A stretch of DNA of 64,000 nucleotides from Hemiscyllium ocellatum (lineage: Eukaryota), in the NCBI RefSeq assembly GCF_020745735.1, contig NC_083417.1, positions 72,354,001 through 72,418,000 of the forward strand, read 5' to 3'. Numbering within the stretch: position 1 is the first letter of the stretch; each line of letters begins with the position of its first letter. Under the pieces are notes generated by a model. That model was not told where the DNA came from. It did no database searches and saw nothing but the letters and a program-made list of their open reading frames with translations. The position numbers were made by a program, and so were the translations under genes. Shown piece after piece: positions 29,547 through 38,841 of the stretch.

Positions 29547-29870
29547 TGGCTGATGGGAGCTTTCTCCAGATGTTCCAGTTCCCCGCCCGTATAACTTCAT
29601 TGAAAGGTGCAAATGTCTCCATGAATTGCTCTTTCACACTTTTCGATCCCATAGCACGGCTAGATGTTTCCTGGAGGAGGCGAAACCGGGAGGGGACATT
29701 AAAACCCACAGCAGCAGACAACAGGACGGTGGTGATACCTTTAGAGCAAACAGCTACCGAGCTCCACTTGCTCAATGTGGATGTTCAGGACGCCGGAGTC
29801 TATTATTGCAGCGTGACAGACTGGCAACAGAAAGTTTCCTCTGGGAATGGGACTGAGCTTATTGTGCACG
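29547..29870 (+). CDS. IgSF receptor exon: VJ-type Ig variable domain
   Basis: Acceptor tttctgacag|TG, donor CACG|gtgagt. Motifs MNCSF, VSWRR, DAGVYYC and J-like GNGTELIV. 324 nt, phase 1-1. Confidence 0.95.
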
Positions 29871-31439
29871 GTGAGTGAGAGTGAACGCGGAAAGCGCTAG
29901 GGGAGGACTCTGCAGATGTATAATAAGATGAAAGAATTGCAGTTGGTGGAAATCAGGAACAAAAACAAAAATTGCTGAAACACCTCAGCAGCTTTGGCAG
30001 ACTCGGTCGAGAGAAATCATAGTTAATACTTTGGGACAAGTTCTCTTTATAGTTTTCATTGAAGTATATTTTTAGTGATCTGAATTAACGCTCTGGCATT
30101 GAATCACTCGGTTAGATAACATTCTTTGACAATGCAATTTTTCTTTGAATCTATCGCAGAAGGAAATATTCTTGAATCGCTGCTGTGTGTGGTTAATGCA
30201 GTAAAATCGTGCTATAATGGATAAATACAAAAATGTTTCCTCAGTGATAATGAATCTTTTTAATTTTAAATCTAAGTGAGGATTCCCAATGCTTTGAGTA
30301 TCGACAATCCTCCTTCGCTTTGTTCAGATGGTCAACTTCTTAGCACAAGACTCTGCTCCCGTTCAAGATTCTCTAGTATGTGTCTTTAATTACTCTTCTT
30401 TAACCCGTCGAGTCCTTCCAGAATATTATATATTTCAATGAAATCAACTCTGATCGCCCCAAACTCCAAATAATATAGACACAGCATTCTCATCCCCTCA
30501 GTACAGGACCATTCCCAAATCACGGAGAGAAATATCTCTGCTTTTCCTCCAATTTAAATACAAACTTGCTAAAGTGTTGAGAGACCAAATTAAGCAGAGT
30601 ATTTTATAAATGATCGGCCCAAAACACTGTGAAATTGTGCAAATGCTTATTTATACCTTTGTAGTTGCTGTCCCCCTTGCACTTTTCCTTCTTACTTGCC
30701 TGCTCCTTGTAGGAGAGCACACAAATACCTCAGAACGTCTGGACTTCAGATTATTGCACATGTCAAAAATATTCCATTTAACGATTAGTACATCAAAGGT
30801 CTTTACATCATATTTTATAACTAATCTCCAAGCCCCCATTTACGTAATTCGGCTATGTAGCATACTCACAACTTTATTGTATGATGTTATTTGTTTGTTT
30901 ATTTGTTGGATGTGGCCATCTAAGGTTATGCCAACATTTGTTGCCCATTTTTACTTTTGATTTAACTGAGTTATTTAGTTAATGGAACATCTCATTGTTG
31001 ACACGACTGGCTTATATTTTGGCCAGATTGTGGCAGTGTAGCAGAATTCATCCTAAAGGAAAGCATTTGAATCAGATCAATTTTTGCAACAGTCAGTGAT
31101 AGGTGAAATTATTGCCATAACTGACACTTGAATGATTAAACACTCAAATAATTAAAGAATTCAATTTAAATTAGTTATAGAATTTTATCATAGTTCCGCA
31201 GATTTCCAAAGGTGCTCAGATTTGGATCCATGTTCATGGGGCATTAGTTTGTCTCCTTGAATTACTAAGAGAGACAGGAAATAGTGTGAGGTATATCTCA
31301 GGGAGGGGGTTCATTAGCACATATTGAGATTGATTCATGATAACAAATCAGAATACATTGATAACGTTTTGAACAGTTGAATTGCAACTAGTGTCACGGA
31401 TTAGTGCTCATACATTAAATACTTATAATCCACAATAAT

Positions 31440-32450
31440 ACATGACTGGAGAGAATGTGTGAGGGGAAGGGTTTCAGATTCTGAGGACATTGTGACCAGT
31501 TTTGAGGGAGGTTGAACCAATACCGACTGCATTGATTTACCTGGGCAGAATCAGAATTGATGCCCTGAAAGGAGTATTAGTTAGTGGGGTTTGGCATCAT
31601 TAAAACTAAATTTTCAAGGTCTTAGGAACTGTTCGGGGAGATCGAAGAGACCAAAATTGCAAAATATTGTGAGCAGACCAAATTCTTAAAAAGTCAAACC
31701 TTAAGACCTTGTGTTCTAATGAACATGGCATTCACAAAACAGTGGATAAATGAGTCATGCAAGTAAAAATCGAAAATACTTACAATATTGTTGAGATTAC
31801 AGAGATGGCATTGCAGACGATGAATGGGAATTGAATATCCAGGGTAATCAGTTTTTAGGAAGGAGAAACATATAGTAAAACGAAGTTGGTGGCTGTGTTG
31901 GTGAAAGAACGCCAATAACATAATATTGAGGCAGGATGCTAGCTTACATAAAGTGGAATCTGTATGGTTAGAACTTAGAAACACCAAGGGGCATAGAATG
32001 ACATTGCATATGATCAAAAGCCCCAAACTGATGGTATAATTCTGGGGAAGCTTTAAAAAAAGGAAATTAGAATTGCAAAAAATAAAAGGGCAGGTGTAAT
32101 TAAGGGTGACATGCTCTGCGACTTGTTTGGGCAAATCAAGTCAATAACACTACCCTGAAAGCAGAATTCCTGGAGTGTGCATCGGATAATTTTCTAGAGT
32201 AATACATTGAGGAACCAATGGGAAAGCAGGCCGTCCTCAATTGGGTTATGAAAAAGGAATAGTTGATAATCTAGCTGTGCAACATTCCTTGGGGAATAGT
32301 GGCCATAGGATAGTAGAATTCTTCATTAAGTTAGAGAGTGGCATTGCTGACACGAGGAATCAACTCATGATCATAAATAAAGGAAAATATGGAGCATGCG
32401 ATGGCTATGATGAATTAAGGAGTGATAGCTAATTATGAATGAGTGATAGC
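31440..32450 (+). mobile_element. Old CR1 fragment (ORF1 end / endonuclease) in the V-C1 intron
   Basis: gagatggcattgcagacgatgaatgggaattgaatatccaggg; HSLGNSGHRIVEFFIKLES. Confidence 0.7.
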
Positions 32451-32704
32451 TAATTAGAGAGTGACTATGTAAAAACAATGATAAACCTGTAAAAAGAGGC
32501 ATTGAGAGGTGTGTTTATCTTGGTTTCTTCTAGTGAGAAATAGGAGGACAGGCACTGAGCAATCTTTGAGTAGTAAACATCTTATGAAATTTCAGCATTT
32601 CTTTTTAAATCTGGAACATTAGATACACTAGGTTTGGTCAAGCTCCCACGCACAGAATGAGGGATTTGTCGTTTTTAGTTTTTAGCAGCAGTTGTCATTC
32701 ATGG

Positions 32705-36600: not shown

Positions 36601-36705
36601 TCTGTAGATTAGTTTGATGTTAGAGTAGGATAAAAGGTCAGCCCAACATCGAGGGCCGAAGGGACTGCACTGTGCTGTACTATTCTCTGTTCTATGGTCT
36701 ATTTA
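33640..36705 (+). mobile_element. Long degenerate CR1 (endonuclease to 3' tail) in the V-C1 intron
   Basis: LKCVHLNTISVSNNGDEFRAWISTWSYDVVAVTNTW, IDKSPGPDG and RDLGVHVHRSLKV motifs; gggccgaagggactgcactgtgctgtac..ttctatg tail; many frameshifts. Confidence 0.9.
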
Positions 36706-38565
36706 GGTTAGGGCTGTCAAGACAAACTTGTACTATCGATTTGTTTGATGCATTCTGTAGACAGCTATCTATAAGGAACAAAATCAGAACAAATTTAAAA
36801 CTTACGTTTTAACAAACTGCAAGAATTATGTGCTAGTTGTTTTGAAGCATTTCAATATCTGAGCAAGGACTCATATGTCAGCAAAGCTAACTGCAAGAGT
36901 TCATAGACGGTTTCTATATCAGTCTACATTCAATCCAATAAAGAAAGAATCACTGCTGGATGTAGTGCTGAGAAATTATTTTTCTCAGAAGGAAAAATGT
37001 CCATAGAGAAATAATTAGGACAAATATCTGCTGTATTTTTCAGGTTCACACTGGCTTCGGGAGCACAGAAAATAAATAAAGTAAACCGATTCTTTAAAAT
37101 TCATTTGCGGGATTTGGGTGTTGCTGGCTGGCCAGCATTTATCTGTCACAATTCTAAAAATTTAATTTTAACAATGAGCTGAATCATTAGAAAACAAGCA
37201 TAAAAATATTCATTAGTATGTTTCCAGGTTGTGGACATTCTGCAAGTTGTTTGATTGGCAATGTTCTGCATTTATCCATGATGAGGAGAATAGTTAGACA
37301 TCAGTTAAAAGGAATATCCAACAACAACAGTAGTCTCCACAATTTCAGTAGAAAGAAAACAAGGTGGTTGATGGAGCTAACAAATCAGAGGGACATGATG
37401 ATAAAGATCTGCCAAAGAAGTAAAGATGAGAAAGAATTTTATAATTAGTGACTGTTAGAATATGGAAGTTACAAACAGATTCAATTTAGTCTTACATGGT
37501 ACGATTGGACTTTTTTCTCCAGATACCAACTTCCAGAAACTGTGAGGTAAAAGGAAAGAAATGAATTTGTAGAATTGAAGTTGCAATAAGTCACGCTGAA
37601 ACTACACACCATGTGTTTTTCTTCGGTTTTGTAACTATTGTATTAGTCAATGTTGGACAAGAATGTCTGAAACACTGCAATTCACTTTATGTTTTGTTTA
37701 CCTGTGTAATTTTATTTTATTCAAGATATCTGAACTGTGAAAAATATGGCAACTTAATTCTATAGAACATGGAAATCTTCAAACTATGTATATTATTTCA
37801 GAAGTTATGTGTCCACTTCCTGAGTTATCTTTCAACAACAGGCTTCAATCAGGGAAAGCCTTTTTTACATTTTTGTGCAGCTGCAATTCACACTGTGAAA
37901 CCATTTTACAGAATGCAATGCCTCCTTATTGTATTATTGAAATGGGCAATGTGTATTAAGCAGGTTTGACTGATCCTTCATAATTGCTGTGGTAAAATGC
38001 TGGAAATCCTATGGCAGCATGTTCACCGCAGGACTACAGTAATTCTAGAATGCAGAGTACCCATAATTGTTCAAGAGAAACTAGGAATGGAATATAACTG
38101 TCCACCTTGCCAATGATACGAACATCTGATCAAGGGATAAAAGCAACCAAAGGTTTTAATAAGGGAAAGATGTCTGAAGTGTATTAAAGTATTTGCATTG
38201 CTGGATTTCAATTGAGTGGGTCATAAATTAGTCTGAATGCCAATATTAGGATCCATCCACAGCCTATATTGAGGGAAAGCAAGATTGTTATTAATTGTTA
38301 AATGACGCCTGACCTAACAATAAATAACCACTATACCCCAGGTATTACAACGTAAACCTTGATTTGTTTTACTCAACTTGTTACAATACACTCAGTGGAC
38401 ATCTATCCTGAAGTCAGATTTGAACCCAGACATTTCTTCCAGAAGTAGGAATGTTCGGTCTGTGTCTTAAGCACTAATTGTGAAATTTTAAAATTGACAT
38501 TCTTTGCGTTTTTAATATGATCTATAAGAAACAATTTTAACAAGTTTCCTTTAATTAAATCCCAG

Positions 38566-38841
38566 TGCCGCCAGCTCCTGTGAAGATTACTCAGCAGTCC
38601 CATTTAACACTACTCTGTACAACAGTTGGATTCTTTCCGAAGGAGTTTAACGTCACGTGGTATGAAAATGAAACGGAAATTATGTCTGGGATTAACACAA
38701 CTATACAACAGAACAAGGAAGGATTATATCAAGTTTCCAGTTATCTCAGCCCTGTGCAGAATGCATTGATGTATACCTGTGAGGTTTCTCATGTTTCTCT
38801 CAAAGTCCCAGCCATTGACAGCTATACAGTTCTTTATCAGG
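38566..38841 (+). CDS. IgSF receptor exon: C1-set constant domain
   Basis: Acceptor aaatcccag|TG, donor CAGG|gtaaga. Motifs LTLLCTTVGFFPKEFNVTW, GLYQVSSYL and YTCEVSH. 276 nt, phase 1-1. Confidence 0.95.

Follow-up and report, generated by a model that had tools for sequence, protein, structure and literature searches.

The question raised by the 64,000-nucleotide stretch of epaulette shark (Hemiscyllium ocellatum) DNA analysed here, which we call the window, is whether a germline-encoded immunoglobulin-like gene within it is a relic of the ancestor of antigen receptors or a receptor gene of another kind. A reading made from the sequence alone, hereafter the sequence-only reading, had pointed to positions 29547-38841 as a variable (V) domain that is already joined to a J-like (joining) strand and is paired with a C1-set (constant-type) domain, and had proposed that this VJ-C1 pair is relevant to antigen-receptor origins. 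The question is of interest because true C1-set domains are rare beyond immunoglobulins (Ig), T-cell receptors (TCR), major histocompatibility complex (MHC) molecules, tapasin and SIRP, and because a joined VJ next to a C1 domain is the architecture that has been proposed for the gene that was split by the RAG transposon. The answer that we reach is that the gene very probably encodes a germline, non-rearranging type I inhibitory receptor that signals through immunoreceptor tyrosine-based inhibitory motifs (ITIMs) and belongs to a large family of cartilaginous fishes.

Results

Gene structure and isoforms

A search over splice-site combinations gave one model of seven coding exons with GT-AG borders, running from 29317 to 45030 (Table 1), and the translation of these seven exons is exactly the RefSeq Hemiscyllium ocellatum protein P0167 (SIRPα-like, 351 amino acids), with 100% identity by tblastn. 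The window gene is a real, intact epaulette-shark receptor gene that had already been predicted in RefSeq as SIRPα-like, and it lies on an 85-Mb chromosome of assembly GCA_020745735.1. A pseudogene is ruled out, as every exon is open, the splice sites are GT-AG and the match to RefSeq is exact. It can be seen that the interval 29547-38841 of the sequence-only reading runs exactly from the start of the V exon to the end of the C1 exon; beyond these two exons we found a complete inhibitory-receptor gene with a transmembrane segment and a tail that carries ITIMs and an immunoreceptor tyrosine-based switch motif (ITSM).

The leader is split by a 181-bp intron that lies between exon 1 and the V exon. 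The transmembrane helix has no charged residue, and the tyrosine motifs of the tail are LSYAAL (ITIM), TLYAQI (ITSM) and LIYVSL (ITIM). The 64-kb window holds one V exon and one C1 exon of this type, and no further Ig-like exon was found in the introns by tblastn with family proteins.

When exon 4 is omitted the reading frame is kept, and the product is then exactly RefSeq isoform X2 (P0172), which would be a putative soluble form, namely a secreted V-C1 protein that still bears the 'cytoplasmic' peptide. In the RefSeq isoforms of other species (P0006, P0008 and P0011) it is the C1 exon, not the transmembrane exon, that is skipped. Of the words sampled from 29300-29900, 57% were present in a single run, the type of which is uncertain, and exons make up 62% of that interval; we take the match between these two values as only a hint of a spliced transcript, and we infer that the gene is expressed.

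The membrane-proximal domain

The C1 exon carries LLCTTVGFFPKEFNVTW and YTCEVSH. It is matched by the Pfam C1-set profile with an E-value of 1.5e-14 and 54.5 bits (cut-off 21), and the Pfam butyrophilin Ig-C family matches it as well (4.6e-07). Three sequence hallmarks that define C1-set domains have been set out by Hatherley et al. (PMC2785349), and all three are present in the window gene, so that the C1 signatures named in the sequence-only reading are borne out by the profile score and the hallmarks alike. The first hallmark, (F/Y)(F/Y/H)P at the start of the BC loop, is seen as GFFPKEF, and FFP or FYP occurs in 24 of the 26 chondrichthyan sequences in alignment A1. The second, xVxH after the F-strand cysteine, is seen as YTCEVSH, the V and H of which are invariant in 26 chondrichthyan C1 domains (alignment A3). 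The third, a spacing of 13 residues from the B-strand cysteine to the C-strand tryptophan, is seen as C-TTVGFFPKEFNVT-W. When the C1 part of the AlphaFold2 model was compared with known structures, it matched MHC class II C1 domains with a Z-score of 14.6 and a root-mean-square deviation of 1.3 Å over 91 residues. We conclude that the membrane-proximal domain is a bona fide C1-set domain.

The V domain

The V exon reads ADGSFLQ...YYCSVTDWQQKVSSGNGTELIVH, and its J-like strand is encoded in the same exon as the F-strand cysteine. The Pfam V-set profile matches this exon with an E-value of 4.5e-10 and 40.1 bits (cut-off 26), and the I-set profile matches it more weakly (24.5 bits). Both marks of a VJ-type V-set domain are therefore present, that is, a V-set score above the cut-off and a J-like sequence, GNGTELIV, directly 5' of the GT donor. 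We scanned 28000-46000 on both strands for heptamers and nonamers with 12/23 ± 1 spacers and found no recombination signal sequence (RSS) beside the V exon; the nearest weak candidates start from 32968, lie within intronic repeats and have three nonamer mismatches each. Translation and scan thus confirm three points of the sequence-only reading, namely the end of the V exon, YYCSVTDWQQKVSSGNGTELIVH, a J-like strand that shares this exon, and the absence of an RSS beside it. A rearranging V gene is rejected, since there is no RSS, and the description of the locus as a non-rearranging VJ-C1 gene with a true C1-set domain is supported. Nor did the gene fall firmly into the I-set or C2 class or into a non-immune adhesion family.

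Exactly 59 residues lie between Cys44 and Cys104, the number from which a reduced C'/C'' region had been suspected beforehand. AlphaFold2 returned a model of the V-C1 ectodomain with a mean predicted local distance difference test score (pLDDT) of 92.5 and a predicted template modelling score (pTM) of 0.83, and a model of the V domain by itself with a pLDDT of 86.8. In both models strand C (residues 40-45) and strand D (residues 61-66) are linked by no more than isolated bridges, and full C' and C'' strands are absent from the models of the V domain, which agrees with that suspicion. In structural comparisons the V model tied, at Z-scores of 13-14.5, with CD79b, NCAM d1 (I-set), TCR V-beta, VNAR, TCR V-delta, PD-1, CD8 and NKp30. 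Ties among so many V- and I-type domains fit a V domain in which the C'/C'' region is reduced, and by its modelled fold the domain lies on the border between the V-set and the I-set.

We also looked for the two motifs that are associated with pairing between V domains in rearranging receptors, the F/W-G-x-G motif of J segments and the WY(R/Q)Q motif of the C strand, and found neither in the window gene. At these places the window gene has S-S-G-N-G and VSWRRRN, and the family consensus is N-G-T-G and VYWWK. The GNGT of the J-like strand (29847-29855) doubles as an N-glycosylation sequon; it is also found in several close relatives, and others have GTGT or GTGS, which form no sequon. A glycan on the G-strand bulge would occupy the face that is used for pairing in Ig and TCR V domains.

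Profile and fold comparisons

A profile of the family's V-C1 unit was compared with the sequences of the PDB, and bits were taken for each V-C stretch. It can be seen that the Ig kappa light chain (82.9 bits), SIRPα d1-d2 (81.4 bits) and the Ig lambda light chain (81.1 bits) score almost alike, and that they are followed by UrIg2 V-C1 (69.5 bits) and by the VH-CH1 stretches of two heavy chains (58.1 and 46.0 bits). The C1 part is matched separately by SIRPα d3 (48.6 bits). These profile scores place the V-C1 unit equally near to Ig light chains and to SIRPα d1-d2, with UrIg2 further away.

Searches of the PDB with single exons, or with V-only or C1-only profiles, return E-values for whole chains, and such values are unfit to rank families because multi-domain chains (titin, contactin and antibody heavy chains) dominate them; scores for single stretches are usable. 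Read with that restriction on whole-chain values, the V exon alone had NKp30 chains among its few near-full-domain matches (E-value 1.6e-4), and the C1 exon alone had UrIg2 as its top match.

Structure prediction and fold comparison, which the sequence-only reading had put forward as a check, produced a confident V-C1 model, but they ended in ties and did not reach a family assignment. A Foldseek search of the PDB was saturated with Fab (antigen-binding fragment) light chains, with TCR beta chains also at the top. Against PDB representatives, the two-domain model matched Rst/Neph1, B7-H6, butyrophilins, B7-H3 and PD-L2 with Z-scores of 15-17 (B7-H6 17.0, BTN2A1/3A1 15.8, B7-H3 15.7, PD-L2 15.5), and SIRPγ with 13.8. 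Against the AlphaFold Database models of Swiss-Prot proteins, CD276, TAPBPL, CADM1-4, B7H6, PD-L1 and SIRPα were tied, with E-values from 2e-14 to 8e-13. Such ties account for the inconsistent names that the relatives have been given automatically (see below), and with predicted models the fold alone cannot assign the family, the ectodomains of B7, butyrophilin, TAPBPL, CADM and SIRP proteins being inseparable by this measure. A prediction of the V-C1 ectodomain as a homodimer gave a score of 0.00, which speaks neither for nor against dimerisation.

Relatives and phylogeny

The V exon was put through an exhaustive HMMER search, in which 35 cluster representatives matched it below 1e-10. The closest single-V matches, at 41-55% identity, are proteins of horn shark, catshark, basking shark and manta rays that go under the names "tapasin-related protein-like", "natural cytotoxicity triggering receptor 3 ligand 1-like", "SIRPα-like" and "uncharacterized". 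When a full-length relative was used as the query, sevengill shark, white shark, bamboo shark, stingray and the chimaera Callorhinchus were added, along with the further automatic names "CD276 antigen homolog" and "H-2 class I ... like". Members were thus found in Heterodontus, Heptranchias, Scyliorhinus, Carcharodon, Cetorhinus, Chiloscyllium, Mobula, Hemitrygon and Callorhinchus, and among the matches listed a model from Chiloscyllium (bamboo shark; P0191) shares 90% identity across 44% of the protein.

The family alignment reveals a common plan of leader, VJ, C1, transmembrane segment and a tail with conserved xSYAxL, RTVYAQT, LTYAxL and xEYAxI motifs. Short-tailed members, with tails of 13-33 residues (P0058, P0106, P0112, P0134 and P0022), have an arginine or lysine at the N-terminal end of the transmembrane segment. 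Coelacanth, sturgeon and bichir have weaker V-C1 relatives with about 30-35% identity and short tails; in those of coelacanth and sturgeon the tails are very short, and a lysine lies in the transmembrane segment or at its edge. A basic residue at the start of the transmembrane segment is also seen in the activating partners of paired receptors, and the short-tailed members suggest that inhibitory and activating forms are paired within the family as a whole.

A maximum-likelihood tree was built from 35 V-C1 units, the sample being chondrichthyan family units and their coelacanth, sturgeon and bichir relatives. The chondrichthyan family is split from the coelacanth, sturgeon and bichir relatives with an SH-aLRT (Shimodaira-Hasegawa-like approximate likelihood ratio test) support of 99, and the window gene falls within an elasmobranch clade (support 88) among shark and ray sequences. 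On this sequence comparison the window gene is one of many paralogues in a large and little-studied multigene family of cartilaginous fishes. We found no paper describing a cartilaginous-fish VJ-C1 family in the literature searched.

A further family protein of Hemiscyllium ocellatum, P0166 ('CDON-like', 546 amino acids), is encoded on the same chromosome and consists of two tandem V-C1 family units separated by a transmembrane-like stretch; the gene predictor has probably fused two adjacent genes of the family.

Other features of the window

Apart from this gene, the window is poor in genes. At 5279-5408 on the forward strand there is a remnant of the last cytoplasmic exon of the family, with a partial inverted copy at 6304-6372 on the reverse strand; the remnant adjoins an insertion of a long interspersed nuclear element (LINE). 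The remnant reads IKQGTDVKLKCVTLDM, in which the ITIM tyrosine is replaced by cysteine, and then comes to a stop; its remainder (..RKHEVIKINNPNGESRIV) is in another frame. No V, C1 or transmembrane exon of a paralogue accompanies this remnant within the window. The positions of the exons, of the large intron and of the LINE sequences are given in Table 1.

Table 1. Coding exons, large intron and LINE-derived features of the window (positions within the 64,000-nucleotide stretch)
Feature	Position	Strand	Description
Exon 1	29317..29365	+	ATG at 29317; most of the signal peptide (MRVIVLWYISVVGSYA), with a 16-residue hydrophobic leader; GT donor, phase 1
Exon 2	29547..29870	+	V-set domain and J-like G strand SSGNGTELIV; AG acceptor and GT donor, phase 1 at both borders
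Intron 2	29871..38565	+	8,695 bp; LINE/reverse-transcriptase debris throughout, from the list of open reading frames
Exon 3	38566..38841	+	C1-set domain; phase 1 at both borders
Exon 4	42056..42166	+	Short stalk and uncharged transmembrane helix (LVGGCAVAGLLLLLLVTVVIH); 111 bp
Exon 5	42627..42679	+	First cytoplasmic exon (GTGITPVNSRDNSQFEEQ)
Exon 6	44648..44758	+	Cytoplasmic; ITIM LSYAAL and the tyrosine of ITSM TLYAQ(I)
Exon 7	44899..45030	+	Last cytoplasmic exon; ITIM LIYVSL and TAA stop at 45030
LINE reverse-transcriptase open reading frame	6503-9184	-	893 amino acids; nearly identical to the one at 47769-49241
LINE reverse-transcriptase open reading frame	47769-49241	+	490 amino acids; nearly identical to the one at 6503-9184
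Decayed LINE copies	34000-36600	+	Inside intron 2

Discussion

The reading of the window gene as an inhibitory receptor starts from features that are observed directly, namely open exons with canonical splice sites, the classes of the two domains, the uncharged transmembrane segment, the tyrosine motifs and conservation across Chondrichthyes. We file the gene as SIRP-like, not as a SIRP, since it has a single C1 domain where SIRPs have two. In function its best reading, by analogy, is as a receptor that may resemble SIRPα, NITR and KIR. From the motifs, the membrane-distal V domain would bind a ligand on a cell surface or on a pathogen, and the tail tyrosines would be phosphorylated by Src-family kinases. 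Phosphatases of the SHP-1/SHP-2 type would then be recruited and would damp the activation of the leukocyte that bears the receptor, as is the case with SIRPα, KIR-L and the teleost NITRs, and the in-frame isoform that leaves out the transmembrane exon would supply a soluble form.

Several points weigh against this reading. The 8.7-kb intron between the V and C1 exons is crowded with retroelement debris. A fourth tyrosine motif, which most close relatives have as xEYAEI or VEYSEI, has been lost from the window gene through a six-residue gap in exon 7 (44983-45000; alignment A4). The gene is also divergent, with a terminal branch of 0.6 in the tree. Finally, the ligand, the phosphorylation and the recruitment of phosphatases in the above scheme are all deduced from motifs in the sequence.

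A potential explanation that stays close to the RefSeq label is that the gene is the shark orthologue of SIRPα, the CD47-binding myeloid 'don't-eat-me' receptor, minus one C1 domain. SIRPα (PTPNS1; structure 2wng; PMC2785349) likewise has an N-terminal V domain that is encoded together with a J-like SGxGTELxV strand, a motif that the window gene resembles, and it has a true C1 domain directly after the V domain, an uncharged transmembrane segment and several ITIM-type tyrosines in the tail. SIRPα combines a J-like strand with a hallmark-bearing C1 domain and an ITIM tail, as the window gene does, and the d1-d2 stretch of SIRPα is among the best matches to the V-C1 profile, with d3 matching too. 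The multi-tyrosine YAxL/YAxI tail is, we presume, also similar to that of SIRPα. However, only one C1 exon lies between the V and transmembrane exons, compared with two C1 domains in SIRPα, and the V domain of the window gene is shorter, having 59 residues between its cysteines and a reduced C'/C'' region; its tail has three tyrosine motifs. In addition, Ig light chains score as well as SIRPα does, and the fold searches tie SIRP with B7, TAPBPL and CADM. The window gene also belongs to a many-membered, fast-diverging chondrichthyan family with many variously named paralogues in each genome, unlike a conserved one-to-one orthologue. We therefore regard orthology with SIRPα as improbable and retain the reading of a SIRP-like receptor.

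A second explanation is that the gene is a little-changed survivor of the VJ-C1 precursor of antigen receptors from before RAG, comparable to UrIg and UrIg2, and that it acts as a dimeric antigen-binding molecule and not as an inhibitory co-receptor. In favour of this are the joining of V and J within a single exon, the intron-split leader and the genuine C1 domain; in addition, the profile scores with Ig light chains equal those with SIRPα, and UrIg2 is the top single-sequence PDB match of the C1 exon. The likeness to Ig light chains and TCR chains extends to the V-J-C1 order and the split leader, and to the 81-83 bits of the kappa and lambda V-C stretches; UrIg and UrIg2 (PMC12227049; structure 9dmx) are, like the window gene, elasmobranch genes with a single-exon VJ, a split leader and C1 domains. 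Differences from both groups are nevertheless numerous. In contrast to Ig light chains and TCR chains, the window gene has no RSS, carries V and J in one exon, has neither F/W before GxG nor WYxQ, possesses a transmembrane segment and an ITIM tail, and is only about 20-25% identical to them. UrIg and UrIg2 are single genes, linked to the MHC or to the antigen-receptor complex, that encode at least three (up to eleven) C domains but no ITIM tail (PMC12227049), whereas the window gene has one C1 domain, an inhibitory tail and many paralogues; UrIg and UrIg2 themselves are rejected as its identity on account of the single C1 domain and the ITIM tail. The V-C1 stretch of UrIg2 also scores below both Ig light chains and SIRPα, and the V fold is tied with CD79b, NCAM d1 and VNAR. 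With the gene standing among many fast-diverging paralogues, we think survival of a precursor in little-changed form very unlikely.

This bears on the proposed relevance to antigen-receptor origins, which holds in part. Because the scores of Ig light chains (81-83 bits) match those of SIRPα, the family belongs in the joined-VJ/C1 group that has been tied to the origin of antigen receptors (PMC2785349, PMC11599192). Nothing marks this copy as ancestor-like, however: it lacks both the F/W-GxG and the WYxQ motif, its fold lies on the V/I-set border, its branch is long and it is an ordinary divergent member of its family.

It could also be asked whether the gene encodes a ligand of the B7 or butyrophilin type, with a V-C ectodomain, and not a receptor. 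The top whole-ectodomain fold matches are B7-H6, BTN2A1/3A1, B7-H3 and PD-L2, with CD276 first in the Swiss-Prot fold search, the C1 exon matches the Pfam butyrophilin Ig-C family, and CD276 homolog and NCR3LG1-like are among the names given to relatives. Yet the structural scores are tied and hang on the predicted angle between the domains, and the membrane-proximal domain of CD80 lacks the C1 hallmarks (PMC2785349) that the window C1 domain possesses. The J-like GxGTxLxV strand and the ITIM/ITSM tail are features of a receptor, and a ligand of this type is accordingly a reading to which we attach very little weight.

Germline-joined Ig genes are known in sharks, and joining by RAG in germ cells is known for shark Ig clusters. 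That the window gene is such a germline-joined copy, derived from an Ig or TCR gene that formerly rearranged, is a reading to which we give almost no credence, even though its V and J are fused in frame with no RSS. Its identity to the V and C domains of Ig and TCR amounts to only about 20-25%, a tail with ITIMs and a lone C1 domain are foreign to Ig and TCR, and the joined form is common to chimaeras, sharks, rays and bony-fish relatives, so that any joining would be ancient and a recent one is ruled out by the low identity and the spread of the joined form.

Other receptors with a joined VJ offer comparisons for the inhibitory receptor that we favour. NKp30 (NCR3) has a non-rearranging VJ with GNGTxLxV and the highest identity (28%) among the structural V matches. 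It is an activating receptor with a charged transmembrane segment, no C1 domain and no ITIM, whereas the window gene has a C1 domain, an uncharged transmembrane segment and an ITIM tail; NKp30 is rejected as its identity because the C1 domain and the ITIMs are present. The teleost NITRs and the PRARPs of chicken and fish combine a germline VJ-type V domain with an ITIM tail and form multigene families with inhibitory and activating members, and their second domain, where there is one, is not of the C1-set. The joined-VJ set has been described as comprising CD79, NITR, SIRP, CD8, NKp30 and PRARP (PMC11599192), and PRARP is also named in PMC10751288.

A more ambitious proposal is that the VJ-C1 family represents both the missing paired natural killer (NK) or myeloid receptors of sharks and the closest living sister of the SIRPs and the light-chain-type receptors, descending directly from a VJ-C1 gene that existed before RAG. 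Its grounds are the equal similarity to Ig light chains and to SIRPα and the presence of both ITIM members and short-tailed members with a basic transmembrane residue. We hold this to be unlikely in its full form, although it deserves more credence than any of the alternatives considered above. The window gene alone adds little, as a RefSeq prediction of it exists already, and it is not a unique relic of the antigen-receptor ancestor. It is the family that gives the locus its interest: present in the oldest jawed vertebrates in inhibitory and probably also activating forms, its members are candidates for NK-type or myeloid paired receptors of sharks, and the family is a useful outgroup with which to root the domain trees of SIRP, Ig light chains and UrIg.

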